A DNA stretch of 64,000 bases from positions 1 through 64,000 of the IMG/VR virus record IMGVR_UViG_3300034073_003542. One strand, written 5' to 3'. Numbering within the stretch: position 1 is the first letter of the stretch; every line of letters begins with the position of its first letter. A model generated the notes under the pieces. It made no database searches. It was given only the letters and a program-made list of their open reading frames with translations, and had not been told where the DNA came from. The translations under genes were made by a program, and so were the position numbers. This document shows positions 2,983-34,960 of this stretch, in pieces.

Positions 2983-3004
2983 ACAACAATAATGCGGAGA
3001 AATT

Positions 3005-4618: not shown

Positions 4619-4650
4619 TCACTTAACAATAACATATAGGGAGAAACAAC

Positions 4651-5103
4651 ATGGCTCTTAAAACAGATCGTATCGTATTAGACACTGACGTATCATTCTT
4701 CATGAACACAGACGAAGAACGTGGTGGTGTTGCTTGCGTTGTAACAGCTGGTAGTGGTGTTAGCATGGACGATGCCAATGCTGTTGTTGAATATGCTGCT
4801 GCTGTTTCTGGTTCAAAACCAATTGGAATTTTAATGAATGACGTTGTTGATATTGACGTAACTCGTCAACATATCAACTTCCAGAAAGACGAAGTTCTAG
4901 TTGGTAACAAGGTTTGCTTACTTCGTAAGGGCCAAGTTACTACCAATATGATCGTTTCTGGTGCTACTCCTTCTGCTGGCGATGACGCTTATGTTGGCGT
5001 TAGCGGTTTGATTGGTACAAGCGCAACTAATGCCGTTAAGATCGGACAATGGTTGAGCAGCAAAGATTCCGATGGTTATGCAAAAATTGCCGTAAATCTA
5101 TAA
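4651..5103 (+). CDS. Capsid decoration/stabilising protein
   Basis: 150-aa beta-rich Gly/Ala/Val protein directly before the major capsid gene; strong GGGAGA RBS. Confidence 0.65.
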   Translation: MALKTDRIVLDTDVSFFMNTDEERGGVACVVTAGSGVSMDDANAVVEYAAAVSGSKPIGILMNDVVDIDVTRQHINFQKDEVLVGNKVCLLRKGQVTTNMIVSGATPSAGDDAYVGVSGLIGTSATNAVKIGQWLSSKDSDGYAKIAVNL

Positions 5104-13872: not shown

Positions 13873-14490
13873 ATGCCACATTTTAGACCAAATACATGGG
13901 ATGAAAATATTTGGAATGATATAGTAAACAAAAATGAATACGGTGTTCATGATCAATGGCCTCACAATCTAATAGATATTGGTGGACACATAGGTTCTTT
14001 TAGTTATAAAATGTTATCAAAACATAATACAAAAAAGGTTGTTATTGTTGAACCCAATACTGAAAACTACAATCTATTAAAAATTAATCTTGCAGAATTT
14101 ATAAGAGAAAATAAAGTAATAACCCTAAATAGGGGGATCGGTCGCCCAGAAACAAAACTAGATATGAGTGATGAAACACTAGGAACTAATACTGGTGGGT
14201 GTCCTTATTTTGAGTCAAAGTCTGGCAGAATAGATTCTATCTCTCTAGACTCGATTATTGATATGATCGACGACGGAGATTCGATATTACTAAAAATAGA
14301 CTGTGAAGGATGTGAGTACGAGGCTTTGTCTTCTTGTACAAAATTATCCAAAATTAATTGTATAGTAGGAGAATTTCATGATATAGATGAAGTTAGAAAT
14401 ATTGGACTTATAAGAGATATTTTAAAAGAATACAATTTTAGTTATCACTATAAATCGCATCATTTAGGTTTGTTTGGGGCGCACAAATAA
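13873..14490 (+). CDS. FkbM-family SAM methyltransferase
   Basis: IDIGGHIG SAM motif, VEP, LKIDCEGCE, GEFH. Confidence 0.85.
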   Translation: MPHFRPNTWDENIWNDIVNKNEYGVHDQWPHNLIDIGGHIGSFSYKMLSKHNTKKVVIVEPNTENYNLLKINLAEFIRENKVITLNRGIGRPETKLDMSDETLGTNTGGCPYFESKSGRIDSISLDSIIDMIDDGDSILLKIDCEGCEYEALSSCTKLSKINCIVGEFHDIDEVRNIGLIRDILKEYNFSYHYKSHHLGLFGAHK

Positions 14491-18416: not shown

Positions 18417-18707
18417 ATGAACCAACAAGATAAACAAATTATCAAAAAAAGAATTCAGACAACTATGATTGGCGCACTTTATGAGTTTGAGGAAAATTTT
18501 GGTTATTTATGGGGTTTAGACAAGGAAGAATCTCAATTGACAGAAAAAGAATTAAGATTTCGTGATCAATGGGAAGACGCCCGAAACAACATATTAAACA
18601 AAGGAAATAATCAGTTGCGACAATGTTTGAGTGAATTAGAAAAATCACACGGACAAGTTAGATATAATTACAGATTTAAGAAAGGAAACCAAGATAATGA
18701 AAACTAG
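18417..18707 (+). CDS. Small hypothetical protein
   Basis: AGGA RBS, tightly packed with neighbours. Confidence 0.6.
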   Translation: MNQQDKQIIKKRIQTTMIGALYEFEENFGYLWGLDKEESQLTEKELRFRDQWEDARNNILNKGNNQLRQCLSELEKSHGQVRYNYRFKKGNQDNEN

Positions 18708-19566
18708 AAATTTTACTGTTAAGATCGACGATAAGGACGTAGAGTTTGTTGTTAAAAGCCCAAGTTTACAAGATCAGAGGGAAGCTACCAAGGTTTATAA
18801 TCAGGCCTTTACAGAGGCTCTAAAGAGCAAAGCTGTGGTTCGAGCAAAATTAGACGATTTGCTTGTTGAGCAAGGTTTGTGGGACGAAGCAAAACAACAA
18901 AAATTTGCTGCCCTACAGGACGAAATTCTTGATGGCGAAAAGAAGTTAAGTAAGGGTGGTATTTCTCTAAAAGCAGCTAAAGATGTTGCTCTAAATATGC
19001 GAGTAAAAAGAGCAGAATTGCGTGATTTAATTAGTGTCAAAACAAATCTTGATACTCATACAGCAGAAGGCCAAGCTGATAATAGCAAATTTAATTATCT
19101 AGTTTCTGCTTGTGTGGTGTATAAAGATAGTAATAAGCCTTATTTTAAGGACTACGAAGACTATAACAACAGAGCATCTGATGTTGTAGCTCTTTTAGGC
19201 GCCCAAAATTTGGCTAATATGCTTTATGGTCTAGATAATGACTATGAAGATAAGCTACCAGAAAATAAGTTTTTGAAACAGTATAAATTTGTTGATGATA
19301 AATTGCGTCTTGTTAATAAAGATGGTCATTTAGTTGATAGCGAAGGAAGGCTAATTGACGAAAATGGTCGTTATATTAACGAGAAGGGTGAGTTCGTTGA
19401 TAAAAACGGAAATCTTGTAGACAAAGAAGGAGACTATATAGTAGAATTCCAGCCATTCTTAGATGATGATGGAAAACCTGTAGTTTTAGAGGACACAACC
19501 AAAAATGAAGAATCAACACCGCCAGAAGAAAGTAAATCAGAAGAACCTGTTGCAGCCACAGTGTGA
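18697..19566 (+). CDS. Probable tail assembly chaperone with 7-aa D/N-x-x-G repeats
   Basis: Last gene before the TMP; repeat array VNKDGHLVDSEGRLIDENGRYINEKGEFVDKNGNLVDKEG. Confidence 0.5.
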   Translation: MKTRNFTVKIDDKDVEFVVKSPSLQDQREATKVYNQAFTEALKSKAVVRAKLDDLLVEQGLWDEAKQQKFAALQDEILDGEKKLSKGGISLKAAKDVALNMRVKRAELRDLISVKTNLDTHTAEGQADNSKFNYLVSACVVYKDSNKPYFKDYEDYNNRASDVVALLGAQNLANMLYGLDNDYEDKLPENKFLKQYKFVDDKLRLVNKDGHLVDSEGRLIDENGRYINEKGEFVDKNGNLVDKEGDYIVEFQPFLDDDGKPVVLEDTTKNEESTPPEESKSEEPVAATV

Positions 19567-19651: not shown

Positions 19652-22600
19652 ATGGCTAGTAAATTCAATCTAACAGCAGAACTTAATCTACGTGGACCAG
19701 CAAATCTACGTACTGTTGTAGCTGATATACGCCGTCAATTAAGTGGCGTAAAGGTTGATGTTGGCGTTAATGTTGCAAAAAATGCTGGTCGTAATATTGA
19801 CAATATAACAAATCGTCTAAATCAACTTAATGCCTCATTAGTACAAGCTCGCACTAGTACCGATCAACTAAACGCTTCTTTTGGTCAATTAGCGGCTATT
19901 GCTAGATCAATAGATACGGTCAATGTTAAAGCGTCTCAATCGACTAAACAACATGCTGACTCGATAAATCAAACAGCAAAAGCTGCTGCTGTAGCTTCTA
20001 GTAGAGTAGAAGAGTTTGGTAAGCAAAGCGCCCTTGCTATTAAGAGATTTGCGGCTTTTAGTTTACCTACTGTAACATTTTTTGCTTTAGGAAGAGCTGT
20101 TCAGTCTGGTATCGAGTCATTTATTGATTTTGATAAACAGATGGTAAAGTTGGAGCAGATCACTGGAAACACAAGAACTCAGCTAAAAAGTTTGAGCGGT
20201 GAAATAACTCGTCTTTCTACAACTATGGGTGTTAGTAGTTCAGAATTAGCTAAAGTCGCCGAAACCCTAGCTCAAGCTGGTTTGAGCGCAAAAGATACTA
20301 CTACTGCTCTTCAAGCTCTAGCTAAAACAGATTTAGCTCCATCATTTGATAATTTGACCCAAACAACAGAAGGCGCTATTGCTGCTATGCGTCAGTTTGG
20401 TTTAGAAGCCAAAGATTTAGAGCGAGCACTAGGATCTATTAATGCTGTTTCTGCTGCGTTTGCTGTTGAATCAGGAGACATTATCGCTGCTATTCAGCGT
20501 ACCGGTGGTGTATTTGCAAGCACAAGTAAGGGCGTAAGTGAAGGCACCGATGCTCTTAATGAGTTTGTTGCTGTGTTCACCAGCGTTCGTGCTACAACGC
20601 GTGAAAGCGCCGAGACAATTGCGACTGGTTTACGTACTATTTTTACGCGTATTCAAAGAGCTGGAACAATCAATCAATTAAAAGACTACGGCATTCAATT
20701 ACAAGACTTAGAAGGTAAATTCGTTGGACCTTATGAAGCAGTAAAGAGATTAAGCGAAGGACTCAAATCTCTCGATCCAAGAGATATTCGTTTCTCTAGC
20801 ATTATCGAAGAGCTTGGTGGATTTCGTCAAATTGGTAAAGTGTTGCCATTAATTCAACAATTTGCTACTGCTCAAGAAGCTCTTAAAGTAGCTCAAAGAG
20901 GACAAGGAAGTTTAACAGACGCCCAAATCAAGGCTCAACAAAGTCTTTCAAACCAATTTTCTAAAGTTCGCGAAAATTTCTTGGCTCTTATGAGAGATAT
21001 TGGTAATAGCACAGCTTTTCAAGGTTTAGCGAAAATTGTTTTGGTTCTATCAAATAGTTTAATTGGTTTAGTTGGGGCCTTTAAACCAGTACTACCTATT
21101 TTGGCTGTTATTGGAGCTATTAAGGGAATTAGCGCTATTGGCAGTTTTTCAAAAGGATTTTTTGGAAGTAAAAAACAAGCAAAGCCATCATTATTTGCTG
21201 GTGCAGCTGGCGAAGACCCAAAAGAAAAAGCTACGCGAGAAAGAAACGAAGCTACTGCTAGAGCAGCAGAAGCTTTAAGGATTAATACAGACGCCCTTAA
21301 TAAATTAACTGGCGCAATTACGGCCCTTGATGCTACTATTCAAAGTAGACCCACCTCAACTTTTAGTAAGGGTGGCAAGGTTCTTGGATTTAACACTGGT
21401 GGTATTGTTCCTGGTAATGGTGGTGGCGATAGAGTTCCAGCTCTTTTAGAGGGTGGTGAAGTAGTCATCAACAGAAGGGCTGCTCAAAGACATGGTAAGC
21501 ATAACATAAATAAATTAAATAGATATGCTTATGGAGGCTTAGTAGACGCCAATATTGTTAATAGTAATGATCAATATATTGGATTAAAAAAAAATGATGG
21601 GACAGCAAAAGAGGATACATTTGATATTAAAACTAAAAGACAATATATTACATTAAAAAATGTTGATAGATATGCTGGAAAAGCAATAGCAGATGGTGAA
21701 GTTGTTAACTTTGATGCTCAAGGATACAAACAAAGAGCCAAAACACCAGGATGGAAACAATTTGAACAAATAATTGAACAATTAGGATATAAAGACTTAA
21801 ACAAATCCACAAAGAGAAACAATTACCCCATTGACTTTACTAAAGGTGGTGAATGGTACGATGCAAAAAACGTATCCTCACCAGTTCCAGATAGGGAATT
21901 AGCAAGAAAGGCTTTACATCATATCTTAACGGAAACATATAAGAACTATGATTATCTCACACCACACAAAAAAATAAAAACTAGAGACGAAAACAGTCTA
22001 CTAAAATATACAAATAAACCTATTACTGTAGGTGGAGATGAGATTGAAGCCACTAGAACTATTACTCAACTTATTCCTAGATATGAAGTAGATAATAATC
22101 AAAAAAATATAGATAAAATACAGGGTGCTATAACTGGTACAAGTAAACAAAAAGGAACACTAAGTCGTAATGCCAATAAGGCTTTACAGCAAGATCTACA
22201 AGACTTACAAACAGATAATACAGTAGGAACATTAGGGGCGCGCAAAATATTATCAGCTAGTAATAGACTTAGTAGTAATTTTACATTAGGTGGATTAGTT
22301 CAAAGCTTTGCGGAAGGTGGTCGTATTGGATATATTGATTCAGACGTTATTAAAGAACAACTCGCTGGACCAAAAGAAAAATCTATAGTCGACGCTATGG
22401 CTAGTTTGGGATTAGGAAAAAATAAGAAAAAAGTAAATACTTATGTTGCAAAACTTATTGATTTAGCTAAATCTTCTCGTGGAGCAGAAGAAGCTTCTGT
22501 TAAGAAGTTGAGTGTGCTTTTTGGTTCTGCTGGTAGTGGCAAGTCTTCTATCCTAACAGGAGCAGCGGGTATTCCAGGAAGATCCCCTTTTACTGGAAGT

Positions 22601-25600
22601 AAACCAATTTTAACGCCTAAAGATATAGATGACGTAGAAGAAGTTGTAATAGCTACAAGTACAGTAACTCCAGATAAAATCAAGAGATTTATTTCTGATG
22701 CAGATGAAGTGTACGCTATTAGTGCTACGACACAAGCAGAACAAGAAAGAATTAAACAAAATAGAAAATCCAGAGATGAAACGGGATTAGGATCTTATGG
22801 GCGTAAAGCTGGGGCCACAAAAACCGCAAAAATTGATACTGTATTTGAAGAAGCTTTATTACTAGAACTACAACAACAAAATCAAGCGCGAGGCAAATCA
22901 CAAAAACTATCTATTTTTGGAAGAAGCGATAGCGATGAATTTAGAGAAAAAACTGGAACAGAACTACCTAGTTTTAGAAGAGAAAAAATTAGCATTGCGA
23001 GAGGTAGCTTTGGACCATTTACCGCTGGTCACGAATATCTACAACAATTTGCCCAAGAAGAATACGGAATCCCACCACAAGCTTTTGCTTATTTGGTTGC
23101 TCCAGACGAAGGAATAGATATTGGGCGAGAAATAACTAATCACGATATTAGAACAGCTATCTTAGATCAATCTATTCGTGAAGCTGTAGTTCAATTAACT
23201 TCTAGAAAAGGCAAGAGCTATAATGTTGGAGCTACTGGTCGTGGAGATAGAAGTATACCACAAGGAATAGAAATAACCAAATCTGGAGCAGCGCAAAGAT
23301 CGGTTCTATTACCTGGTGCCGGTAGCATCAATATTGTTTCTAAGGCTGATGCATCGGCTAAAAAATTAGCTAAACTAGAAAAAGCTTCCCAAGAAGCCGG
23401 ATATAAACTGGTGGATATTCCTCGATTTGAAGGTATTTCTGGATCGCAAGTTAGAGAAGCTATCGAAACTGGAGATCTAACCACTCTACAATATGCTCTT
23501 AATCCCACTTCATATGCTATAATGAAGAAAAATTTACAAAATATTCAAAATAGAATTAGGGCCGTTCCAGAATTAATTACCAAAAATAGAGCAACATTAA
23601 CATCAGAATTAGATCCAATAGACGAGAAGATTCGTGAACTAGGACCAGATCCAGCCAACTTCAAAGAAGTAAATGAGCTTAAAAACCAAAGATATGATAT
23701 CATATCATCATACTCATACTCTTTACATAAATCGTTACAAGAATTAGCTTCACAAGATCCAGTTAATTTTGCTATTGACACAAATATTTCCGACGAAGAA
23801 CTATCCTCTGCTCGACTAGATATAGCCAATAGAGCGCCCTTAAAACAAAGATCAATTGAAGAAGCGGTTTTAGCAACACAACCTAGAGTTTTAGCTGAAT
23901 CTGTTCCAGCTTTCGCAAACAAGAAGAAAAAAACTAGTACTGGTAGAGGTAGACAATATAATATAGAAAGAGAACCTACTTTAAATGAACTTCAAGATTC
24001 TTCTGGACCTTTTTCAGAACTAGCTCAGTTAACAGTTAAAGATCCACAAGAAGTTCAGGCTAAAATTAAAGACTGGCAAGAATTTGTAAAAAAAACTATT
24101 AGAGATGCTGGATTAGATGAATATGGTGGCTTTAAAGCTTTAGATGGAAATTCTGGTCCAGCAACTATTGCTAGTATTTTTGACCAAAAAGCAGGTAAAG
24201 CAAAACCAATAACAAAAAAAGTACCAATATTAGATCCAAACGGTAATCCTACCGGTAAATATCGAGATACAGGAGAAATAATTGGATATCAAAAATCTAA
24301 ATCAAAAAAGGGTCGCACAAAAGAAGATCAAGCAGTTATAGACGCTGTTATTAAAACAGCAAGAGAAGCTAGAGAAAAACTTGTTGACAAATACAAAGAA
24401 GGAAAAAGAGAGTCTTATAGCTTTATAAAGCCAGTAGATGCTACTGAAACATTAGATTTCAAAAAACAAGGACTATTATTTGCGGGAGTTGGTATTAATG
24501 GAGAGCCATATAGCCCAAAAAGATTATCTTTAGGCTCTGGTTTAGATGTTTTAGTTGGAGGATATATATTAAACGATAAAGATACTCGTAAAGAAATTGA
24601 ACAATATTCTGAAAACACAATAAGAGCAGAAAAAACAGCCGCAGAGAAAGGACAAGCTGGTGTGGCTGCGTCTTATCTAAAACGTGGTAAAAAATTAGCA
24701 CTAGATTTTGATAAAACATTAGTTACTGGAGCGGATCTTCATGGCGACGATTTAGATGCGTTTGCTGATATAGATAAAGTAAAGGCTAGTTTAGAAAATC
24801 CTCAAACTAAATTAACAATATTAGGAGAGAAATTAAGAAGAGTATTGGCTAGTCAAAAAGCTCAAGCTACAAAAACTGATTTATTATCTAGAATGAGAGT
24901 TGTAACAGCAAGACCTCATCATACTGTTGGAATTTTAGGAAATTGGTTAGCTCAACAAGGTATACCTATAACAGATATTAAGGGTGTTGGAGGAAAAGGA
25001 TTATCTGATCAACAAGTTGCAGAAGCTAAAGCCGCTTTATTAGATTTAGAGTCATTATTTATTGATGATAATGAAACTAATGTGAGAGTTGCCAAAGAAC
25101 AAGGCTTTAATGCAATTAGATATGGTGCTGCTGAATTCGACGAATCTGGAGAAAGATTACATAGAGGACAAGACGTTATTGAAGGACTATTTCTTCAAAA
25201 TATAATCAAAAGATTTAGCGGTAGACAAGCTGTTGGCGGAATCAATAATACTAGTATGGATTTTCCAACAGGGCTTGGATTAGCAGCAGAATTATTTCCT
25301 GGTTTAGATCCAGATATTCCCACAGACGCAAAAAGAACCTTACGTGGAGCCTCCGACTTAAAGAGTAATATTACAAATTATCTTAAGAAAGAAGGAAGAT
25401 TTAATACAAAATCAGTAGGAGCAGCGCAAGGTCAATTAGAGCCAGTTGGATTTGCTGGCGGAGGTATTGTTCAGCGATTTTCAAAAGCTGGACAAGTAGA
25501 TTACGATCCCAAAACTAAAAGAGTAATGAATATTCTTGGGAAAATTAAAAGTCCAACTGGAACAATAGATCCTAGCAAATTAAGTGAAGCTGAATTAGGT

Positions 25601-28600
25601 ATATTATCTAGTCTTGGCGGAACATCGCAAATAGGTTCTCGTTTATTCGAGGCTCCTGGTGTTGGAGAGATGAATAAATTTGTGAGAGAAAATGAAGCAG
25701 ACAGAGGAAGATACGCAGCTGAAATTAAGACCAAAAATGCTCCAGTAAGAGAATCTCGTGCAGCAGAACAAAGAGCCAGACGAGCAAGAAAAAGTGAAAT
25801 AAGGGAGATGAGTGAAACAAGACTCGCCCAAATGAATCTATTTGGTGGTATGACGGAACTAGATCCAGAAATTATCGAAGGTATTGATAAACCAAATCCA
25901 GAAGATATTTTTGGGGCTTTAAGAGAAGCTTTTGCTGAAACAACAGATAGAGGAAAAGCTTTAGCAGAAGAGGGTGGGGGATTTTTAAGTAAGTTCCGCG
26001 AAGGAATCAAAAAGAAAAAATTTATTTCTGCGACAGAATTCGTAGGAAGTTTACCTAATGCCGAAGAACAAATCAAGTCTGCTCGTAGAGAATTACAATC
26101 ACAGTCAGCCAGCACAAAAGATTCAAAAATACAAAAAAGTCTAGCGGATCAATTAGGAAAATCTTCTATAGGACTAGAAGAATTGGCTGCTTATCGTGGG
26201 GGTGCATTGCCAGCTAATGCTAGCAGAGCGACAAAATTTGCGTGGACAATGAGCCAAATGGTTGAAGGAGCTAATGAGTTAGCTAAAGGTGGAATAGTTG
26301 GATTTGCTAATGGAGGAAACGCAGATTATTATTCTTTAGAGAAGAATAGTGGGTTTAAATCTGGAGAGTTTGATGAATTAGTGCGATTTGCTAAAACTAA
26401 TGGATTCACATTGCCAGAATTTCAAAAATATTTAACAAAAAGACTAGCCGAGAAAAAAACTAATAGTCAGTTAATGATGGACCCATTACAATTGGCTCAA
26501 GCATTGATATCTCATACTCCAACGCCAACAGATGCCCAACGTAAATTAGCTGATTCATTAAAAGGAGGGCCAATAGACGCCCAATATAATCCTAAATATG
26601 ATAGGGTTGTTAAAGGTTTTGCTAGTGGTGGATTGGCCGAACACACAGACTCTATGGCTGGATTGATGCGCGACCTATATGGCAATAGATCAAGCGAAAC
26701 ACCAACCAAAAAACAAAAGAATTTTGGACAAATTGCCTTAAGAACAGGAAATAGAATACAAGCAAATTATTTTGACGGCCCCGATAGAACAGGTTATGTT
26801 ATAGCAGATAAAATGGGAGATATATTCGCTGTTCAATCCTCTTCAGCTACAAGTGGTTATGGTCCAAAGCTATACGATATTGTAATGGAAGCAGCTACAG
26901 AACAAGGTTCGATGCTTACATCTGACAGAAAAAGTGTAAGTAAAGAGGCTAAGGCTGTTTGGGACTATTATTTTAATAAAAGATCAGATGTTAAGAAAAT
27001 ACCATTAGATCCGATTGATTGGGTCTCTAATAACAGACTACTAGATGAAAAACTATATGGACCTCCAGATACATGGCCTCCATATAATGATCCTGCTTGG
27101 GTACTGCAAACAGGGTATCAAAAGAATCCGTCAGATATTAATAATCCAGACTTAGTCCAAAGATTAGCTATTGGTGGATCTGCCTCGTTTGCTAGTGGAG
27201 GAATAGTACCAGCCCGAGTATCAAACGGAGAAGGATTTGTTCCTCCTGCTCAAGCTAAGAGTATTGGATATGGCACCTTATCTAAAATGAATCAAGCAGA
27301 TCGTATTGGTGGATTTGCTAGTGGTGGAAGTATTAGCAGATTTAGTGGGCCAGGTAGCGGAACCAGTGACTCTATTGGGCCTGTTGGTCTACCAGTAGGA
27401 AGTTTTGTAATTCGTAAGAAGGCTATGGATGCTATGGGGTATGCTAAGGGAGGAGTTGTTGGATTAGCTGCTGGTGGTGTTTTAGATAAAGAAAGACTTG
27501 ATTATCTTGACTATTTAGCCAAAGAAAGAGGACAAACAGTAGCCCAATATCAAAGAGCAGAAGCTGGAAATGTAGTTAAAAGAGCTAATGAAATTCAATC
27601 AGAAAGCAAACAAGCTAAAAGAAATCTAACTCTGTTAGGAACATCACAAAGGAAAAATTTGGGCGGAGTTAATGTAGCGGCCACAATAAAAGCAGGCACA
27701 ACAGACGCTAATTTTGCAAAAGTAAATGCTGCTGTAGAAGCTTTTACTAATCAGATACAAAAAGCTGATCCAACACTATCTTACGATAAAGCTAGAGCTG
27801 CTGCTATAGGTATGGCAGATGCCTTGGCTAGAGGTGAGACCTCTGCTGATTCTGTAGCTGTAGCAAATAAGACTCTTAAAGGAAAATTAGATATAACTGT
27901 CACTAGCACTGAAGCCCTTATAAAAGCTGCCGATGATGCTGGTGTCGCTTTAGAAGACTTAGGGGCCGAAGTAACTACAGATGCTACTGGTAAGATAGTA
28001 GGTATTAAAAATAAAGGTTCGGCCTTAACAGATCAAGAATTTCTACAATCTCGTGCTGGGCAAAGATTTGGGGCGCTTGGAAATATACTACCAGCAAGAG
28101 CATTACAAGGATTTGCTGAATCTGGATTTGGTAAGGTGTTAGGTTCTGGTGCCGATTTTATTGAAGGTAAGAGCGGCGGAAGATTTGGTAACCTAAGTAG
28201 AGGTTTTGCTGCTCTTGGTGGATTTCAAGGAATAGGAACTGGATTAGCTGGAGCAAGTGAAGGAATTAAAAGCTTGTTGCCTGTTGGAGTTACTGATGAT
28301 CCCGGTATTGCTGGTACTTTTGGCGGATTAACTGGAGCTGGTACTGGAGCTGCTGTTGGAGCACAATTAGGTTCTTTTGCTGGTCCAATAGGAACATTAA
28401 TCGGAGGTATTGGTGGGGCTATCGTTGGTGGAATTAAAGGATATTTTGAAGCTAGTAATCAAGCAGTACTAAAAGGCGCTTTTGATAAACTTTCAAGCTC
28501 AACATCAAAACTAGACGACGCCTTTAAGCGTCTAGATAACGAATTTACTAAAGATAATTTTAGCGAAACAACAAAAACTTTACGACAAGTTGCCCAAGAC

Positions 28601-31600
28601 AATGTAGCTATCGGTAAAATAGCTACTGAGGAAAAAACTTTTAGTAATTATTTTACAAGACCAAGCGATGCTGTAAGACAAGAAGCTCTAACAGGCTTTA
28701 TATCTCAATCAAGAAATATAGCTACATCAAACGTTAAACTTGGACAAATACAAGCATCCAAATTAGCAACAACAGGCCAATTGGATAATGCAAGCTTTAG
28801 TCCTATTTTAGAGCAGTTTGCTACGCAAGATCAGAAAAACGAAGCGGCAGTTTCTGCATATGTAGCTAAGATGTCAGAAGCTGGAGCAAGCGAAGAACAA
28901 ATAGGGAAAATACTAACAACAAATAGAACACTAGCTATTAAAAAAGGTCTAGAGTTTATCGCAGCAGAAGACGCCCTTATCAAAAAGAATGAACTTACAG
29001 TAAGGGGAATAAAAGAAGTAGAAAGAGCCACATTTAGATTATTAGATGTTTATAGAAAAGCAGGAGCCAACGCCCAAAGATACGGAGACGAACTAGAAAA
29101 TGTTACAAATCGTATTGCTGGATATATAGGAGATTTAACTGGTGCCGCGCAGCTACAAAACGTCAATAGAGAAAATGAACAGGTATTTGCTAATATATCA
29201 GCATATTCAAAAGATGAAATTCGCGCCGCAGCCGAGCAAGTTTCTGGGTTTTCTGGAAATACGCCAGAAACAAAAGAATTAGCTGGGCAAGCAATAGTTG
29301 CCAAAGTATTAACAGATGAATTACCTGGATTGATTTCTAGATCTGGTGGAGATAAAGGAGAAATAATTAAAGGACTAACAGCCGCTTTTGAGGCACAAGG
29401 AATTAAGGGTAGAGGAGTTAATGAAATATTAAGTCAAATTGAAAAAGTCATTGATGACAATAACGATAAAGGAACAGGCTCTGGATCTCTACTAGAAGAT
29501 TTAGATAAGAGTGGGGTTTACACAAAAGCGTCCAAAACTGCCGAAGAAGCAGTTAAGACACTAGGAACCCTGCAAAAACAATACAATGATACCTTGCAAA
29601 AACTTATTGATTTTTCAAACCAAAGAAACCAAATCATACTTAAACAGAACGGCCTATTACGCAAAGCAGAACAAACTAGACTTAAAGCAGAATTAGAACT
29701 AGCTGATGTTTTAGGTAAGAGTATATCATTAGATAAACTTAATAAGCCGTTCGAGACCGAAATAAAATCTCTAACTTCTAGTATTGCTGGCGCTGGATTT
29801 TTAGATGGGGAAACATTAGATCCAACAAAAATTGGACAAGCTATACAAGGAGCTGCTTCTAGAAATAAGGATTTAGAGCAAGCTATTCTTAATGAAAAAG
29901 CACAGTTCAATAATGCTACTACAGAAGAACAAAAAAATCAAATTAATCAAAATATTAGAGGATTCCAAGAAGAACTAGCTAAGAATAAATTAGGGATTAC
30001 AGAAGCAACAGAAGCTCTAGAAAAATTGGCTGACGACGGAACTCGTGCCGCTAATGCTTTAACTAAAATTCAAGAAAAGCAACAAAGAGGTAAAGCTACT
30101 ACAGATAAGATTTTTGAAGCTTTTACATTAGATCCACAACAAGTAATAGAGCGTAATTTTCAAGCCGGTATTTTAGGAAACATACTAAGTGGAGACAGAA
30201 CAGCCCTAGCTACTTCACAAGGTCGTGGTGCTGCTGTTGCTGGATTAGAACAATTTAATGGAATATTACCAAAACAACTATATAATGAATTAAGATCGCA
30301 GTTATTAGAAGCATTTTTAAGATCCACTGGGGGATTAACAGAAGCACAAATTCAACAACAGGTTGAGTCTGTGAAAAATGAGGGCATCGACCCAAATGAT
30401 CCTTTAATTCAAGCTTATAAAGAAGCTTCTAGCAATTCTATTGATGCTATGAATGCTTTAAGGCTATCACAAGATGCAGCAAGAGAAGAACTTACTAAAG
30501 AAATGAGAAATTTGAGCATTAGCTTAAATGGAGTTGGAAATATATTTCAAGGAGCCTTAGGTAGTTCACGCGGACCTGCTCCAGACGAAAAGGCTAGTGG
30601 TGGTAGAATTAGATTATCTAAAGGAGGTAAAGCTGTTCCTGTTAGAGTTTCTAATGGAGAAGGTGTTTTTAACCGAGCAGAAGCTGCAAAAATAGGATAT
30701 AGTAGACTTCAAAAAATGAACCATGCTGATAAAAATGGGCACCAGTATGATGGAGATATTAATCGGTTCAATGGTCCTGGTACTGGAACTAGTGATAGCA
30801 TATTTACACAATTAGAGGAAGGCAGTTATGTTATTAGAGCTAAGGCAATGGAGGCTATGCAGACAGCAGCTAATGGTGGTAAAATTCAAAGATTAGGTGT
30901 CGGCGGAATTACAATTAATGGAAATTATTATCCGGCTAGCGATAAAGAAAACGAATGGAATCCAGAAAAAGAATTAGCAGAAATAAATAGAAGAGCAGAA
31001 GAGCGACAAAAAGAAGCAACTAATAGAAAAGCCGATTACGATAAACAGATGGTTGAAAGATTTGGAACAAAAGAAGATCGTGAGGCCTCTAGAGTAGAAG
31101 CACAAAGAAAGAAAGCCGATGCACAAGCTAGATTAGATGAGGCAACAGCAAAAAGAGAGGCTTCTATTCAGGCTCTTTTAAATCCTGTTCAGGTTTCTGA
31201 AACAAGAACACCAGAAGAAATACAAACAGTAATCAACAATAGAGCTAAACAAATTGAAGATAGATTAACACAAGAAAGAAAAGGTAGAAGCTTGGCCTTA
31301 AAGGGCTTAGATCCTAATTATGAACAGCTAAAAGCAGATAATGCGCCAGCAACAGCAATAGGTAAGCTTAGAATATCGGACAATTTAAAAACTTTTGAAT
31401 CACTAGTGAATGAAGGAGATGAATTAGCGATATACGCTAAGAAATTTGGTCTAGAATCAGCTTTTAGAAAAGAAATAGAAAATAGATATAAATATTCTAA
31501 TAATTTGCCTAGTCGTAGAACTAGATCTATAATACGAGATAAAGACGGAAAAAATCCAGAGTATGTGACCTCTGATAAAACTGAGATACGAAATATTTTA

Positions 31601-34600
31601 AGAAAATTATTTAATGAAAGAATGCGAGCAGAACGAGAAGCTGATCGTAAAGTTCAAGAAGCTAATCCTAATTTAAACAAAAATAATTTCTTAGTTGGTC
31701 TTAAAGCTGCTGGCGAAAATTTAGCTAACAATCCAGTAGCAGGAGCACTAAATAGAGGATATAGAGGAACTATTGGGGCGGGCTTAAATGCTATAGGGGG
31801 CGGACTTGGAACTCTTGTTGGTTTAGGAGCCAAAGGATTAGGATTTAATGATTTTGGAAACGATCTAGTTGAAAGAAGTGGCAACTTAATAGGTGCAGCG
31901 GGAAGAGATGTTATAGACATTTTTAATGCAGATAGACATCAAGCCCAAGGAAGAAATCTTTTAAATCTTTTACAGGGTAATTTTAATTTTGAAGAACAAA
32001 CCAAAACATTTACTGATCAACAACTAGAAAAAAATGTACAAGATTCTGGAAGTTTGGCCCCATTTACCCAGGCCGCACAATTAACATCTGATATTGCCGG
32101 AGGATCATTGTTTGATTCTGGTAATGTGGTTAAAAAATTGGCAACTAGATCCGTATCTAATCTTGGTGAGATTGCTACTAATGTTGGTAAAAGAATAGCA
32201 AGAAATCCATATGTATCTAGAGGAGTACAAAACGCATATAATATATCTGCTAAATATACAGATTTTGTCTCTGGTTTGGGGCCAAATTTAATTAATAGCG
32301 GGAAAAGAAGTATAGCTAATTTTCCTAATGTAATAGGTAAAATAGGTACTTTTACTAAAGATATTGTTGGAGATATCCAACCATTAGATTATTTAAGATA
32401 TATACAAAATAGTATTTCTAATAAAAGTAAAAATATAACAGACACAATCTATAATAAAGTTCCACAATTTGTTAAACAGTTTATAGAAGACCAAAAAAAT
32501 AAAATAAATTTTACTAGACAAAATTTTAAACTACCAAAATTACCACAAAAAAATACGGTATCAAAATCTTTAACTTTTAAAGAAGTTACTGCTAGTGGAT
32601 TTGCTAACTCTGGTGATGCGTTTGAAGCTAGTAATAGATTAAGAGAAGCTCAGTTAAAAGCCAGAGATATTATAGCCGAATATGCAAGTTCTCCAGAAAA
32701 AGCTAGAGAGCTTTTATCTAAAAATAATTTATTTGACGTTGACGTTTTAGAACTAGATCCATCTTTAAGTCAGAAAGTTAATGCTCTTTCAGGAAAAACT
32801 GGTGGGATTGGAGCACAATATTCTCCAATCAATAAAGCTGTTACTATACCTAAAAAAGATTCAGGAATGGGATTACTGATTCATGAAATATTACACGCTT
32901 TTCAACATAATGTCGGAATAGCGTCTAACGCAAAAGATCCTTTTAGATTTTTACAAGCTAAATCTTTAAGCGGAACAAAAGCGTTAAGAAAACAAATGGA
33001 AGATTTTTTGCAACCAGGAGGAGCATATGAAAAATTAGTTTCTGATTTACGCGGAAATGCTAATGGTGCTGGGTTTTATGATAGTAAGAAAATTTTAGAT
33101 CAAGGAAATTTTGAGTTACTTACTAATTTGGGTCAAGCTGCTGATACTGACGCTTTTAAGAATAATCAAGCAGCACAAGACATGTTAAAAGCTATTATAA
33201 AACATATGGGATTCAAGAATGGAGGTCCAGTATACGCTAACTCAGGCGGATTAATGAGCAAATTCTTTAAGCCAAAGGGGGCAGACAAGATTCCAGCTAT
33301 GCTTTCTGAGGGAGAGTATGTTATTAATCCAAAAGCTACTAAAGAAAATTTTAGGTTATTAGAGGCTATAAATAATAATAAAGTAGGTTCCTATAATAAG
33401 GGAGGATTAATTGAAGAGCTTGAAAATCAAGGAAGAGAATACGTAGACAGAGAAATTGATGCTGACGATAGATATCAAATCGCATCTAATTTTCATATAT
33501 TTCAAAGAGAAGGAACAACAAAAGATAATTTACTACAGCTCGCCGCACGCGCTGCTTCAAATAGAAGAGACAAAACCAACGAAGCGCTTAATAATCCACG
33601 AGGTATTCCTTGGGAAGAGTTATCAGACAAAGAAAGAGACGAATTAATAAAACCAGAATTAGATCGTCTTAATTCAATTGCAAACGAATATCAACAAAAT
33701 CCAGAAGAATTCAAAAAGAATAATACGTTTCAAAATTTTTCAGACGCTCTAGATACAAGAATTAATCATGGTGAGTTAGTCAGACTCGCCAAAGAAAAAG
33801 GAACAGATAATTTAGAAGAGACTGCTGGTCAAGCTGGCAAAATGGGTGTTGCTGGATTTGGGCTGGAAAAGGGCTATAAAAAAACAAAAGAGCGTGGAAC
33901 ATTTGATAGACCAAGATTACCTACTAGACAAAAACAAGAAGAGTCGGCACCACAGACTACTTTACAATCCTCATCCGTACAAAATAGTCAACCTTTACCA
34001 AAAGTTAAGCCTAAGTCTATGTCTGAATTTTTTGGAGTAAAAAATATTACTCCAGAAAAAATGCCGTCATACAAAGAAAGAAAAGCACAACAAGCAACTA
34101 ATACTAAACAAAATATTCATAGTCAAGCAGCGAAAAATCCAAAAAGTTTAGCTGGATCTAGATCAAATCTAATTAAAAAAGCCGAAGCAGAAAAACAAGC
34201 ACGAAAAGATAGGGCGGCAGAAAGAATTCGAGAAAAAGTAAAATTAGGTACAGCAACAGCAAATCAACAAGAAATATTAAGTACGTATGATAATCAACAA
34301 AAATATGGATCTCCTGAAGCTCAAGCTCAATTAGCTCAAGGAATACAATCAATTCAAAATACAGGATCTTTTATTGGCGGCATGGCCTCTAATTTATATT
34401 CTGGAGCAAGTAATGCTGTTGCGTCTGCTGGATCTATGTTTGGACAAAATAAACCAGCGACACAAAGAGGTCTTCAGACTCCTACATCTCCAATACCAAT
34501 AGCTTCAGCTACTAAATCCTCTACATCAACAACATTAGCTAATTCTACTCCGATTCCTGCTTCTGGTACTGTATCTCCAGACGCATCAACCGCTAGTGCC

Positions 34601-34960
34601 AGTGCTTCCTCAATAGATATTTCTGGTTTAACTAGTGCTTTTGATATATTTGGTAAACATGTTGCTACTTTTGGAGAACATGTTAATACTTTTGGAACAC
34701 ATACTACTGCGTTTGGTGGATATGTTGATAAACTTCAGACAGCTATTACCGATGCTAAAATTGAGCTTGTAGGAAATTATAAGGTTGACGTTAATATAAC
34801 TGGAGCAGAAAGTATTGGAAAACTAGAAGAAAAAATGAAGGAGTGGGCTACAGAAATTGTAACTTCAAAAGTCAATGAGTTACAATCAAAAGTATCTGAT
34901 GCAACACGCGGAGCGGTAAAGCCTCCAGCCACACAAGGAAAAACTAATAAAGAAAGATAA
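19652..34960 (+). CDS. Giant tape measure protein (5102 aa) with inserted enzyme domains
   Basis: N-terminal TP901-type TMP region (FDKQMVKLEQITG...LAQAGLS...GLRTIFTRI), hydrophobic Gly-rich segments and DxVPAxLxxGExV motifs. Internal P-loop, TAGH nucleotidyltransferase, HAD, GNAT and HExxH motifs. Confidence 0.9.
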   Translation: MASKFNLTAELNLRGPANLRTVVADIRRQLSGVKVDVGVNVAKNAGRNIDNITNRLNQLNASLVQARTSTDQLNASFGQLAAIARSIDTVNVKASQSTKQHADSINQTAKAAAVASSRVEEFGKQSALAIKRFAAFSLPTVTFFALGRAVQSGIESFIDFDKQMVKLEQITGNTRTQLKSLSGEITRLSTTMGVSSSELAKVAETLAQAGLSAKDTTTALQALAKTDLAPSFDNLTQTTEGAIAAMRQFGLEAKDLERALGSINAVSAAFAVESGDIIAAIQRTGGVFASTSKGVSEGTDALNEFVAVFTSVRATTRESAETIATGLRTIFTRIQRAGTINQLKDYGIQLQDLEGKFVGPYEAVKRLSEGLKSLDPRDIRFSSIIEELGGFRQIGKVLPLIQQFATAQEALKVAQRGQGSLTDAQIKAQQSLSNQFSKVRENFLALMRDIGNSTAFQGLAKIVLVLSNSLIGLVGAFKPVLPILAVIGAIKGISAIGSFSKGFFGSKKQAKPSLFAGAAGEDPKEKATRERNEATARAAEALRINTDALNKLTGAITALDATIQSRPTSTFSKGGKVLGFNTGGIVPGNGGGDRVPALLEGGEVVINRRAAQRHGKHNINKLNRYAYGGLVDANIVNSNDQYIGLKKNDGTAKEDTFDIKTKRQYITLKNVDRYAGKAIADGEVVNFDAQGYKQRAKTPGWKQFEQIIEQLGYKDLNKSTKRNNYPIDFTKGGEWYDAKNVSSPVPDRELARKALHHILTETYKNYDYLTPHKKIKTRDENSLLKYTNKPITVGGDEIEATRTITQLIPRYEVDNNQKNIDKIQGAITGTSKQKGTLSRNANKALQQDLQDLQTDNTVGTLGARKILSASNRLSSNFTLGGLVQSFAEGGRIGYIDSDVIKEQLAGPKEKSIVDAMASLGLGKNKKKVNTYVAKLIDLAKSSRGAEEASVKKLSVLFGSAGSGKSSILTGAAGIPGRSPFTGSKPILTPKDIDDVEEVVIATSTVTPDKIKRFISDADEVYAISATTQAEQERIKQNRKSRDETGLGSYGRKAGATKTAKIDTVFEEALLLELQQQNQARGKSQKLSIFGRSDSDEFREKTGTELPSFRREKISIARGSFGPFTAGHEYLQQFAQEEYGIPPQAFAYLVAPDEGIDIGREITNHDIRTAILDQSIREAVVQLTSRKGKSYNVGATGRGDRSIPQGIEITKSGAAQRSVLLPGAGSINIVSKADASAKKLAKLEKASQEAGYKLVDIPRFEGISGSQVREAIETGDLTTLQYALNPTSYAIMKKNLQNIQNRIRAVPELITKNRATLTSELDPIDEKIRELGPDPANFKEVNELKNQRYDIISSYSYSLHKSLQELASQDPVNFAIDTNISDEELSSARLDIANRAPLKQRSIEEAVLATQPRVLAESVPAFANKKKKTSTGRGRQYNIEREPTLNELQDSSGPFSELAQLTVKDPQEVQAKIKDWQEFVKKTIRDAGLDEYGGFKALDGNSGPATIASIFDQKAGKAKPITKKVPILDPNGNPTGKYRDTGEIIGYQKSKSKKGRTKEDQAVIDAVIKTAREAREKLVDKYKEGKRESYSFIKPVDATETLDFKKQGLLFAGVGINGEPYSPKRLSLGSGLDVLVGGYILNDKDTRKEIEQYSENTIRAEKTAAEKGQAGVAASYLKRGKKLALDFDKTLVTGADLHGDDLDAFADIDKVKASLENPQTKLTILGEKLRRVLASQKAQATKTDLLSRMRVVTARPHHTVGILGNWLAQQGIPITDIKGVGGKGLSDQQVAEAKAALLDLESLFIDDNETNVRVAKEQGFNAIRYGAAEFDESGERLHRGQDVIEGLFLQNIIKRFSGRQAVGGINNTSMDFPTGLGLAAELFPGLDPDIPTDAKRTLRGASDLKSNITNYLKKEGRFNTKSVGAAQGQLEPVGFAGGGIVQRFSKAGQVDYDPKTKRVMNILGKIKSPTGTIDPSKLSEAELGILSSLGGTSQIGSRLFEAPGVGEMNKFVRENEADRGRYAAEIKTKNAPVRESRAAEQRARRARKSEIREMSETRLAQMNLFGGMTELDPEIIEGIDKPNPEDIFGALREAFAETTDRGKALAEEGGGFLSKFREGIKKKKFISATEFVGSLPNAEEQIKSARRELQSQSASTKDSKIQKSLADQLGKSSIGLEELAAYRGGALPANASRATKFAWTMSQMVEGANELAKGGIVGFANGGNADYYSLEKNSGFKSGEFDELVRFAKTNGFTLPEFQKYLTKRLAEKKTNSQLMMDPLQLAQALISHTPTPTDAQRKLADSLKGGPIDAQYNPKYDRVVKGFASGGLAEHTDSMAGLMRDLYGNRSSETPTKKQKNFGQIALRTGNRIQANYFDGPDRTGYVIADKMGDIFAVQSSSATSGYGPKLYDIVMEAATEQGSMLTSDRKSVSKEAKAVWDYYFNKRSDVKKIPLDPIDWVSNNRLLDEKLYGPPDTWPPYNDPAWVLQTGYQKNPSDINNPDLVQRLAIGGSASFASGGIVPARVSNGEGFVPPAQAKSIGYGTLSKMNQADRIGGFASGGSISRFSGPGSGTSDSIGPVGLPVGSFVIRKKAMDAMGYAKGGVVGLAAGGVLDKERLDYLDYLAKERGQTVAQYQRAEAGNVVKRANEIQSESKQAKRNLTLLGTSQRKNLGGVNVAATIKAGTTDANFAKVNAAVEAFTNQIQKADPTLSYDKARAAAIGMADALARGETSADSVAVANKTLKGKLDITVTSTEALIKAADDAGVALEDLGAEVTTDATGKIVGIKNKGSALTDQEFLQSRAGQRFGALGNILPARALQGFAESGFGKVLGSGADFIEGKSGGRFGNLSRGFAALGGFQGIGTGLAGASEGIKSLLPVGVTDDPGIAGTFGGLTGAGTGAAVGAQLGSFAGPIGTLIGGIGGAIVGGIKGYFEASNQAVLKGAFDKLSSSTSKLDDAFKRLDNEFTKDNFSETTKTLRQVAQDNVAIGKIATEEKTFSNYFTRPSDAVRQEALTGFISQSRNIATSNVKLGQIQASKLATTGQLDNASFSPILEQFATQDQKNEAAVSAYVAKMSEAGASEEQIGKILTTNRTLAIKKGLEFIAAEDALIKKNELTVRGIKEVERATFRLLDVYRKAGANAQRYGDELENVTNRIAGYIGDLTGAAQLQNVNRENEQVFANISAYSKDEIRAAAEQVSGFSGNTPETKELAGQAIVAKVLTDELPGLISRSGGDKGEIIKGLTAAFEAQGIKGRGVNEILSQIEKVIDDNNDKGTGSGSLLEDLDKSGVYTKASKTAEEAVKTLGTLQKQYNDTLQKLIDFSNQRNQIILKQNGLLRKAEQTRLKAELELADVLGKSISLDKLNKPFETEIKSLTSSIAGAGFLDGETLDPTKIGQAIQGAASRNKDLEQAILNEKAQFNNATTEEQKNQINQNIRGFQEELAKNKLGITEATEALEKLADDGTRAANALTKIQEKQQRGKATTDKIFEAFTLDPQQVIERNFQAGILGNILSGDRTALATSQGRGAAVAGLEQFNGILPKQLYNELRSQLLEAFLRSTGGLTEAQIQQQVESVKNEGIDPNDPLIQAYKEASSNSIDAMNALRLSQDAAREELTKEMRNLSISLNGVGNIFQGALGSSRGPAPDEKASGGRIRLSKGGKAVPVRVSNGEGVFNRAEAAKIGYSRLQKMNHADKNGHQYDGDINRFNGPGTGTSDSIFTQLEEGSYVIRAKAMEAMQTAANGGKIQRLGVGGITINGNYYPASDKENEWNPEKELAEINRRAEERQKEATNRKADYDKQMVERFGTKEDREASRVEAQRKKADAQARLDEATAKREASIQALLNPVQVSETRTPEEIQTVINNRAKQIEDRLTQERKGRSLALKGLDPNYEQLKADNAPATAIGKLRISDNLKTFESLVNEGDELAIYAKKFGLESAFRKEIENRYKYSNNLPSRRTRSIIRDKDGKNPEYVTSDKTEIRNILRKLFNERMRAEREADRKVQEANPNLNKNNFLVGLKAAGENLANNPVAGALNRGYRGTIGAGLNAIGGGLGTLVGLGAKGLGFNDFGNDLVERSGNLIGAAGRDVIDIFNADRHQAQGRNLLNLLQGNFNFEEQTKTFTDQQLEKNVQDSGSLAPFTQAAQLTSDIAGGSLFDSGNVVKKLATRSVSNLGEIATNVGKRIARNPYVSRGVQNAYNISAKYTDFVSGLGPNLINSGKRSIANFPNVIGKIGTFTKDIVGDIQPLDYLRYIQNSISNKSKNITDTIYNKVPQFVKQFIEDQKNKINFTRQNFKLPKLPQKNTVSKSLTFKEVTASGFANSGDAFEASNRLREAQLKARDIIAEYASSPEKARELLSKNNLFDVDVLELDPSLSQKVNALSGKTGGIGAQYSPINKAVTIPKKDSGMGLLIHEILHAFQHNVGIASNAKDPFRFLQAKSLSGTKALRKQMEDFLQPGGAYEKLVSDLRGNANGAGFYDSKKILDQGNFELLTNLGQAADTDAFKNNQAAQDMLKAIIKHMGFKNGGPVYANSGGLMSKFFKPKGADKIPAMLSEGEYVINPKATKENFRLLEAINNNKVGSYNKGGLIEELENQGREYVDREIDADDRYQIASNFHIFQREGTTKDNLLQLAARAASNRRDKTNEALNNPRGIPWEELSDKERDELIKPELDRLNSIANEYQQNPEEFKKNNTFQNFSDALDTRINHGELVRLAKEKGTDNLEETAGQAGKMGVAGFGLEKGYKKTKERGTFDRPRLPTRQKQEESAPQTTLQSSSVQNSQPLPKVKPKSMSEFFGVKNITPEKMPSYKERKAQQATNTKQNIHSQAAKNPKSLAGSRSNLIKKAEAEKQARKDRAAERIREKVKLGTATANQQEILSTYDNQQKYGSPEAQAQLAQGIQSIQNTGSFIGGMASNLYSGASNAVASAGSMFGQNKPATQRGLQTPTSPIPIASATKSSTSTTLANSTPIPASGTVSPDASTASASASSIDISGLTSAFDIFGKHVATFGEHVNTFGTHTTAFGGYVDKLQTAITDAKIELVGNYKVDVNITGAESIGKLEEKMKEWATEIVTSKVNELQSKVSDATRGAVKPPATQGKTNKER

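Follow-up and report, generated by a model that had tools for sequence, protein, structure and literature searches.

A giant phage tape measure protein with a reiterated lambda gpH-like module and variable enzyme-like cassettes

The C terminus of a phage tape measure protein (TMP) sits in the tail hub, and the TMP leaves the tail before the DNA. In phages lambda and T5 the TMP is cut near its C-terminal part and both pieces stay in the particle. Lambda gpH is cut within its glycine-rich part after tail assembly, giving a C-terminal fragment of ~14 kDa. In T5 pb2 a cut at R1127 frees a metallopeptidase domain, for which unfolded storage in the tail lumen has been suggested, and the last 43 residues before this cut (in pb2*) dock between hub subunits. 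For the JBD30 TMP (gp46), its authors predicted that residues 1022-1066 form a hook of helices and a beta-hairpin, and proposed by analogy with T5 that, following cleavage at residue 1066, this hook holds the TMP in the baseplate as an anchor. Another group of phage proteins, the polyvalent proteins, are multi-domain polypeptides for which entry together with the DNA, followed by processing into separate units, has been proposed (Iyer, Burroughs, Anand, de Souza and Aravind, 2017); TMPs are never mentioned in that study. In a survey of phage protein mosaicism, a TMP sequence signal was seen and no genuine case was confirmed. Here, we describe a giant TMP encoded in a 64,000-nucleotide stretch of an uncultured phage (positions 1 to 64,000 of IMG/VR virus record IMGVR_UViG_3300034073_003542; hereafter the window), which combines a TMP core with a reiterated module related to lambda gpH and with segments resembling cytoplasmic enzymes, and we compare it with these systems. 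Coordinates of all features are given in Table 1.

The giant protein and its reiterated module

The open reading frame (ORF) extends over 15.3 kb and its product lacks cysteine. An earlier note on this DNA had called the product a tape measure protein, with TMP-like sequence mainly at aa 1-570 and ~2610-3645, and both statements were borne out. The product is a TMP of the TP901 family (TP901-1 / PhageMin_Tail), with matches to PF10145 (PhageMin_Tail, aa 184-377, E = 1.7e-25, Pfam), TIGR01760 (aa 144-463, E = 4.8e-29, NCBIfam) and 13 PHROG TMP families spanning aa 27-642, which together place the TP901-type core at residues ~40-560. A glycine zipper (Gly-zipper_Omp, E = 4.5e-5, Pfam) lies at aa ~2890-2935, and a hydrophobic stretch at aa ~4020-4075 is seen in the sequence in addition to that of the N-terminal core. 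When six 1,000-residue pieces and ten inter-motif pieces were scanned with Pfam, PHROGs and NCBIfam, nothing appeared beyond the TMP core, the glycine zipper and one HIGH_NTase1_ass match. The last ~160 residues are expected, by analogy with the structures of T5, lambda, JBD30 and Douge, to be the hub-docking end.

The unusual size of the ORF is the one feature that could point to an artefact of assembly or gene calling, i.e., a chimeric contig or fused genes. IMG/VR contigs of 160 kb and 210 kb carry the ORF DNA with 100% identity, and the sequence is present on three independent contigs in all, which rules out a chimera. In addition, no stop codon interrupts the 15.3 kb, dozens of relatives share the same synteny, and more than 150 representative giants of this kind were found (see below). 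An artefact is thus extremely improbable. The length of the contigs (160-210 kb) suggests a source phage with a jumbo-size genome, and no similar DNA or protein was detected among 50,697 GenBank phages (megablast of 24 kb; tblastn of aa 560-2620).

The motif [FYL]xxGG occurs 21 times in the product, compared with 6.25 ± 2.4 (maximum 15) in 500 residue shuffles, and double-GG elements (GG-x5-8-GG) occur 11 times, compared with 1.3 ± 1.1. This excess agrees with the pairs 8-9 residues apart that had been noticed before. Among the 22 motif positions listed at that time, 18 are exact and the remaining four are degenerate (FSKAG at 25478, (K)ASGG at 30590, AANGG at 30866 and (Y)ANSGG at 33236); three exact matches were absent from the list, one in a hairpin (21443), one in the nuclease-like block (21836) and one in the HExxH block (33008). 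Based on 220 copies in relatives, the double-GG consensus is phi-x-x-G-G-x-[VI]-x-x-[FL]-A-x-G-G.

These motifs are the edges of a larger module of ~75 residues, which consists of a double-GG strand, a beta-hairpin (DTVPAMLTPGEFV), a helix and a second double-GG strand. Its core is a unit of 36 residues, beta-hairpin then helix, with a consensus near PGGGDTVPAMLTPGEFVINKKATKKIGLGKLNKMNK; D, PA, L, GE, V, L, N and GG are invariant or nearly so in the module. Six such units (aa 587-624, 2515-2548, 2567-2599, 3657-3691, 3709-3740 and 4541-4575) sit at four sites in the protein. Each of the 34 relatives described below contains 2-9 units, giving 150 units across 35 proteins. Four further joints lack the hairpin and have either a double-GG element (aa 877-890, 1934-1947 and 2210-2222) or a single motif (aa 2323). 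The earlier claim that GG linkers delimit enzyme domains therefore needs to be amended: the motif belongs to a TMP module also present in ordinary TMPs (lambda gpH, Douge gp16 and JBD30 gp46), and it bounds multi-domain cassettes rather than single domains, as the kinase, nucleotidyltransferase and HAD domains (aa 887-1935) follow each other with no motif between them.

To compare the module with known TMPs, a profile of 42 module copies (A6) and a profile of the six copies (A1) were searched against PDB sequences. Profile A6 matched mycobacteriophage Douge gp16 with two copies (E = 9e-11) and residues 732-786 of lambda gpH (E = 1.3e-5), in which FATGG at aa 733-737, the GEFV hairpin and YATGG at aa ~779-783 were all aligned. 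On these profile matches, we conclude that the module and the glycine-rich C-terminal part of lambda gpH are homologous. In JBD30 gp46, residues 1015-1065 were matched weakly by A6 (E = 0.4, non-significant) and residues 1015-1057 at a borderline level by A1 (E = 0.05), and this stretch overlaps the predicted hook. In a Pfam search with the 42 copies, no family covered the module, and Tape_meas_lam_C was absent from the matches. By our own arithmetic, the 14-kDa fragment of lambda corresponds to ~127 of the 853 residues of gpH; judged from fragment size, the cut would therefore lie near residue 726, at the N-terminal edge of the module. The conserved module Asn was also considered as a self-cleavage residue and set aside, as lambda lacks that Asn in the alignment.

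The module is widespread. Out of 1.84 billion, its profile detected 30,242 representative proteins with E ≤ 1e-3, including 1,566 at E ≤ 1e-30, and the best 150 matches were proteins of 2,122-7,872 aa with 4-12 copies. Two further giants examined by Pfam had the TMP core at their N terminus and no other Pfam match. The protein of the window is thus one member of a large class of giant TMPs in metagenomes.

Mosaic cassettes and their joints

A whole-protein search identified 34 giant TMP relatives of 2,862-7,512 aa, and residues 1-~630 are common to all of them at 50-66% identity. BLAST maps of these proteins were mosaic. The shared backbone comprises the N-terminal core, module 2, the helical region (aa 2611-3625) and the C-terminal ~160 residues, and the shortest relatives, such as P0010 (2,893 aa), contain little else. 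Several relatives (P0009, P0026, P0029, P0031 and P0032) carry other Pfam domains, including EF-hand, SNase (PF00565), SHD1 (PF03983), ADP-ribosyltransferase (PF03496) and PF28597; therefore, the cassette repertoire is wider than that of the protein studied here. Cutting 51 proteins at the motifs yielded 604 segments that grouped into 160 families, 114 of them with a single member.

We then examined the distribution of each block in 144 representatives picked solely for having at least four units. The N-terminal core was present in 126 of them, the HAD block (D) in 38, the kinase/nucleotidyltransferase block (B) in 22, the GNAT block (G) in 17, block F in 10, block S1 in three and the HExxH block in two, while aa 1390-1670, 1950-2205, 3760-4310 and 4600-5102 were found in none. 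As a separate observation, four stretches (aa 1390-1670, 1950-2205, 3760-4310 and 4600-4900; nt ~23819-24661, 25499-26266, 30929-32581 and 33449-34351), together ~1,600 unexplained residues, are without homologs in the relatives and in the representative giant TMPs; at least the first of them was predicted with very low confidence.

Changes in cassette content can be followed at individual joints. The GNAT cassette is present in the protein of the window and in two relatives (L022 and L025), is precisely missing in two others (L005 and L007), and has FASGG on either side. Upstream of the kinase block, xGGxIQKFxxGGxxxR is retained in almost all of ~30 relatives, and the sequence further upstream differs. 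To obtain a general picture, we counted the ends of alignments of at least 150 aa in the 51 proteins. Within 10 residues of a motif lay 33.5% of 11,670 ends, compared with 6.9% expected; this enrichment of ~5-fold overall (2.6-7.3 fold, in all 51 proteins) overstates true shuffling, because glycine-rich, indel-prone joints break alignments by themselves, and is partly inflated because the kinship of the sequences amounts to pseudo-replication. Two of the clusters of ends that fall on motifs are given in Table 1.

At the DNA level, only microhomology was found at the joints, the longest being 17 of 18 nucleotides (nt 26615-26632 versus 27311-27328, at the two FASGG motifs around the GNAT indel). 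Such sharing is insufficient for classical homologous recombination, which was rejected, and recombination at the joints appears plausible only via microhomology. One explanation is that the joints matter for evolution only, as flexible, indel-tolerant spacers perhaps aided by microhomology, with no role in processing or delivery. The GNAT indel and the enrichment of breakpoints at motifs would both be accounted for in this way. On the other hand, the module is conserved far beyond the need of a spacer, and it is common to lambda, Douge and JBD30 TMPs that have no cassettes. We consider a purely evolutionary role improbable, and more so than either of the two alternatives discussed below.

Predicted folds of the cassettes and neighboring genes

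The earlier note had named six enzyme domains and proposed structure prediction of the segments. Two regions were modeled, aa 887-1935 by AlphaFold2 (AF2) with an alignment of 21 sequences (model 1) and aa 2200-2625 with 17 sequences (model 2). Confident folds were obtained for aa 887-1386 (predicted local distance difference test, pLDDT, 80-90) and 1666-1826 (pLDDT 85-95), and confidence was low for aa 1395-1666 and 1827-1935. Four of the proposed domains (P-loop kinase, nucleotidyltransferase, HAD and GNAT) agreed with predicted structure and motifs, and the other two (HExxH and nuclease-like) with conserved motifs only.

Block B contains a Walker A motif (GSAGSGKS) at aa 958, GPFTAGH at aa 1121 and ISGSQVR, and it matches HIGH_NTase1_ass (PF16581) at aa ~1238-1346 (E = 3.7e-8). 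The corresponding patterns, GxAGSGK[ST], G-F-x-P-x-T-x-G-H and I-S-G-[ST]-x-V-R, have been retained among relatives that share 30-40% identity, the latter two in 21 sequences. When model 1 was compared with the PDB by Foldseek, the matches for this block were a zeta-toxin-type P-loop kinase and the nucleotidyltransferases PPAT and NMNAT, with a target-normalized TM-score (TMt) of up to 0.60. In viral models the top match was a PNKP phosphatase domain (TMt 0.61), followed by cytidyltransferase-like and polynucleotide kinase/phosphatase proteins. Both the motifs and the modeled Rossmann fold assign the second domain to the HIGH superfamily of nucleotidyltransferases; its resemblance to the TmcAL/UPF0348 group is a lead. 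Stand-alone homologs of block B (nt 22310-23791, aa 887-1380) of 272-865 aa were absent from a collection of 5.8 billion proteins in a word-indexed search, which could miss distant relatives; in that search, block B was found only inside giant TMPs. This suggests that the block has adapted to life inside a TMP.

In block D, the HAD motifs I-IV are invariant in six sequences, and Foldseek matched its model to AphA (E = 9e-4) and the T4 Pnkp phosphatase (TMt 0.63); thus, motifs and modeled fold are those of a HAD-superfamily phosphatase. The presence of a P-loop kinase and a Pnkp-like phosphatase in the models suggests nucleic-acid end healing, again as a lead. Behind the HAD domain, a tail (aa ~1845-1930, nt 25180-25440) with the pattern D[FY]PxGLG...F...P..IPT[DE]xKRT is also found in loci L004 and L007-L011; several of its positions are invariant among six sequences, and its prediction confidence is low.

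For block G, almost all of the top 50 Foldseek matches were GNATs (probability 0.8-0.98, E ~1e-2), with a model pLDDT of only 65-78. The anti-CRISPR protein AcrVA5 was among them (TMt 0.57), and an SGYGPxLYD segment lies at the place expected for the acetyl-CoA-binding beta4-alpha3 motif. The model, of moderate confidence for this block, points to a GNAT acetyltransferase fold; no Pfam or PDB sequence match was found for this block. Block S1 is a candidate PD-(D/E)xK-like nuclease whose YPID...DAK motif is kept in three relatives (L025, P0030 and P0034). Similarly, the HExxH block is a candidate zincin-type peptidase, conserved as HExLHxxQ in P0019 and P0023 (three proteins with the query). 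Single-sequence phmmer searches of four blocks against PDB sequences returned essentially nothing, and profile searches with the kinase/nucleotidyltransferase, HAD and GNAT blocks gave sub-threshold hints only.

These motifs bear on the simplest alternative, namely that the protein is purely a ruler: its 5,102 residues would set a tail of ~0.75 µm (1.5 Å per residue), the modules would be register or docking elements for the tube, chaperone or hub, and the enzymes would be relics or act on the envelope. Very long TMPs and tails are indeed known (Gordonia phages, for example, combine TMP genes of 9 kb with tails of 500 nm), ordinary TMPs contain the module once or twice, and the scaling of unit copy number with protein length (r = 0.75, 144 representatives) fits a periodic structural element. 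However, the Walker A, HIGH-type, ISGxxVR, HAD I-IV and HExxH motifs are kept in relatives that share only 30-40% identity, which argues for selection on enzymatic activity. In addition, none of the folds is a cell-wall hydrolase, and the highly polymorphic cassette content is typical of conflict proteins, not of rulers. We regard a pure ruler as unlikely.

With regard to the genomic context, the order and sizes of the ORFs around the TMP gene are kept in every relative fetched, and the ORFs flanking the gene have no family matches. Just upstream, at the position of tail assembly chaperones, are ORFs of 96 aa (18417-18707, +) and 289 aa (18697-19566, +), whose sizes are constant in all relatives; the latter is in the +1 frame relative to the former with an 11-nt overlap, and no obvious slippery heptamer for a chaperone frameshift was found there. 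Further upstream lie a capsid cement protein gene (4651-5103, +; XM1 gp53 / E217 gp24 type, E = 2e-7) and an ORF of 335 aa (5135-6142, +) that matches no family and is probably the major capsid protein. The structural block also holds genes for an 854-aa protein with an FGE-sulfatase domain (6812-9376, +), a mannosyltransferase (12556-13869, +; PF11051, E = 7e-34), which is at the same place in relative L005, and a methyltransferase (13873-14490, +; phrog_8156). These three genes may serve glycosylation or another modification of the virion. Near position ~42600 both the coding strand (+ to -) and the sign of the GC skew change. No tRNA gene was found in the whole 64 kb.

Table 1. Features of the giant TMP gene (positions in the window; aa, residues of the product)
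Feature	Position	Strand	Remarks
Giant TMP ORF	19652..34960	+	single ORF, 5,102 aa; aa i = nt 19652+3(i-1)
N-terminal TMP core, TP901 family (aa 1-570)	19652..21361	+	PF10145, TIGR01760, PHROG; hydrophobic segment aa ~450-500
Module 1 (aa 571-632)	21362..21547	+	double-GG, unit aa 587-624, YAYGG; 33 alignment ends at aa 624-644
Block S1, nuclease-like (aa 632-876)	21545..22279	+	YPID...DAK, PD-(D/E)xK-like motif
Bare double-GG linker FTLGGLVQSFAEGG (aa 877-890)	22280..22321	+	precedes kinase cassette; 28 alignment ends at aa 864-884
Block B, predicted P-loop kinase-like and HIGH-superfamily nucleotidyltransferase (aa 887-1386)	22310..23809	+	
Region C, low-confidence, possibly disordered spacer (aa ~1395-1666)	23834..24649	+	no homolog in any relative
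Block D, predicted Pnkp-phosphatase-like HAD (aa 1666-1826)	24647..25129	+	motifs DFDKT, TAR, K, DD
Double-GG linker FAGGGIVQRFSKAG (aa 1934-1947)	25451..25492	+	second half degenerate
Double-GG linker LAKGGIVGFANGG (aa 2210-2222)	26279..26317	+	
Block F, predicted small helical bundle (aa ~2223-2322)	26318..26617	+	confident in model 2; in 21 of 51 relatives
Block G, predicted GNAT cassette (aa 2323-2512)	26618..27187	+	FASGG at both ends
Module 2 (aa 2505-2609)	27164..27478	+	units aa 2515-2548 and 2567-2599, four GG motifs
Central TMP-like helical and hydrophobic region (aa ~2611-3645)	27482..30586	+	glycine zipper; shared backbone
Module 3 (aa 3646-3752)	30587..30907	+	units aa 3657-3691 and 3709-3740
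HExxH block, candidate peptidase (aa ~4330-4520)	32639..33211	+	HEILH at aa 4411
Module 4 (aa 4521-4585)	33212..33406	+	FKNGG, unit aa 4541-4575, YNKGG; phrog_25241 TMP match
Conserved C-terminal ~160 aa (aa ~4940-5102)	34466..34957	+	common to many relatives

Possible delivery through the tail and relation to known systems

Taken together, we lean slightly towards a reading that combines a giant modular TMP, cleavage or docking at the modules and delivery of the cassettes. Its architectural part is nearly certain, whereas cleavage and delivery have about an even chance of being correct. Variable cassettes are inserted into a conserved backbone made of the N-terminal TP901 core, the helical/glycine-zipper region and the C-terminal end. 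In this model, the modules would resemble lambda gpH, T5 pb2 and the JBD30 hook in being sites where the TMP is cut and/or docked to the hub. Their homology to the part of gpH that undergoes cleavage lends the idea of a cut indirect support. The cassettes would be stored unfolded in the tail lumen. During ejection the hydrophobic, channel-forming region would exit first and the DNA-proximal N-terminal core last, so that cassettes lying between the two would enter the cell via the TMP channel just ahead of the DNA. They would then regain their folds in the cytoplasm, which supplies ATP and acetyl-CoA, and act as early take-over or counter-defense enzymes.

Several observations weigh against this reading. 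The phage is uncultured, and delivery into the recipient cell is deduced solely from the known ejection of TMPs. Three folded domains abreast would exceed the ~4-nm lumen, and unfolded or extended storage is therefore required. The AF2 model of the module had low confidence (pLDDT 35-58), with the expected hairpin-helix pattern, and neither profile A1 nor A6 gave a detectable sequence match to T5 pb2, so that analogy with T5 is only positional. No Pfam family, peptidases included, matched the HExxH block at E ≤ 5, and no peptidase was detectable among the neighboring genes, including a lambda gpK-like JAB able to cut after GG; a JAB or other peptidase of a neighboring gene as the GG protease was dropped accordingly. 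Sequence profiles alone were non-significant for HAD or GNAT, and the Foldseek E-values were modest (1e-4 to 1e-2). Finally, the earlier prediction that cassette gain and loss should break at GG motifs held for the GNAT indel and for the excess of alignment ends, partly inflated as it is, and failed elsewhere: motifs flank the HAD block on its upstream side in only 7 of 23 relatives and on its downstream side in 8 of 23, and clusters of ends at aa 1376, 1679, 1901 and 3615 lie off the motifs.

An additional possibility is that the protein is a polyprotein for the producing cell, in which cuts at the GG modules late in infection free the enzymes there and only the backbone enters tails. The enzymes do need cytoplasmic cofactors, globular domains are a poor fit for the tail lumen, the regions between cassettes are predicted to be disordered, and the modules resemble a known region of TMP processing. 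However, the cuts in lambda and T5 follow tail assembly and both fragments remain in the particle, and the cassettes lie between two backbone parts that need register in the tube. Late release of a kinase, GNAT or nuclease also offers no obvious gain over separate genes, and the kinase/nucleotidyltransferase block lacks stand-alone homologs of the size given above. It is unlikely that this explanation holds, to about the same degree as the pure ruler.

We also propose, as a more specific and doubtful version of the combined reading, that the module is a self-contained TMP processing element that includes the site of the gpH to gpH* cut. Multiplied in the giants, the modules would each serve to release or to dock one cargo cassette during expulsion, and a siphophage-type tail would in this way inject polymorphic cytoplasmic enzymes ahead of the DNA. 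If this version were true, it would represent a new route of phage protein delivery, and a widespread one given the 30,242 module-bearing proteins, of which at least the best 150 are giants.

More generally, if the cassettes are delivered as proposed, long-tailed phages would have, next to the capsid, a second compartment that holds proteins for injection, and its content would be swapped cassette by cassette among relatives, as are toxins in polymorphic toxin systems. The ~160 uncharacterized cassette families are candidate early take-over or counter-defense enzymes, among them the kinase/nucleotidyltransferase pair that seems confined to TMPs, and the giant TMPs also provide a natural scaffold with which proteins could be loaded into phage tails. 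The 50-year-old question of where and how lambda gpH is cut is now tied to a defined conserved module that is accessible to mutagenesis in lambda, with E. coli K-12 as the host.

Among known TMPs, the protein is related to lambda gpH, whose residues 732-786 share the FATGG/YATGG flanks and the GEFV hairpin of the module. Lambda gpH differs in having one module copy and no enzyme cassettes, whereas the protein described here has six units at four sites and four bare linkers. We infer a functional link with the gpH cut. The JBD30 gp46 hook resembles the module at the borderline or non-significant level given above, and both T5 pb2 and JBD30 gp46 have at most one envelope-acting enzyme domain each and no arrays of cytoplasm-type enzymes. 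Enzyme domains that leave the tail at infection are also found in mycobacteriophage, staphylococcal and T5 TMPs, in the form of embedded peptidoglycan hydrolase motifs; these are cell-wall enzymes, while the folds predicted here are numerous, polymorphic and of cytoplasmic type, needing ATP or acetyl-CoA.

Similarity to polymorphic toxin systems (Rhs and CdiA, with pre-toxin motifs such as VENN) is a working analogy: a short motif marks the junction of constant and variable parts, and modules are exchanged. Here, the cassettes are internal and not C-terminal, and downstream there are conserved ORFs of structural size instead of immunity genes or orphan cassettes; for these reasons we do not place the protein among polymorphic toxins.

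The protein also resembles the polyvalent proteins. Many unrelated enzyme domains (predicted GNAT, kinase, nuclease and phosphatase types, and ADP-ribosyltransferase in relatives) occur in one polypeptide, their number falls within the 2-15 unrelated effector-type domains per phage polypeptide that characterize this group, an HExxH block is present, and the gene lies among late structural genes. The Pfam MPTase family, the self-processing zincin of polyvalent proteins, had no match in the product. Polyvalent proteins are described as packaged in the head or delivered by conjugation, whereas in this case the carrier is the TMP and the units are parted by a reiterated, TMP-specific module. We found no description in the literature of TMP-borne arrays of cytoplasm-type enzymes or of the reiterated module. 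Thus, TMPs with embedded cell-wall hydrolases and injected polyvalent proteins were known already, and what the giant TMP adds to them is the presence of such arrays and of a reiterated module within a tape measure protein.

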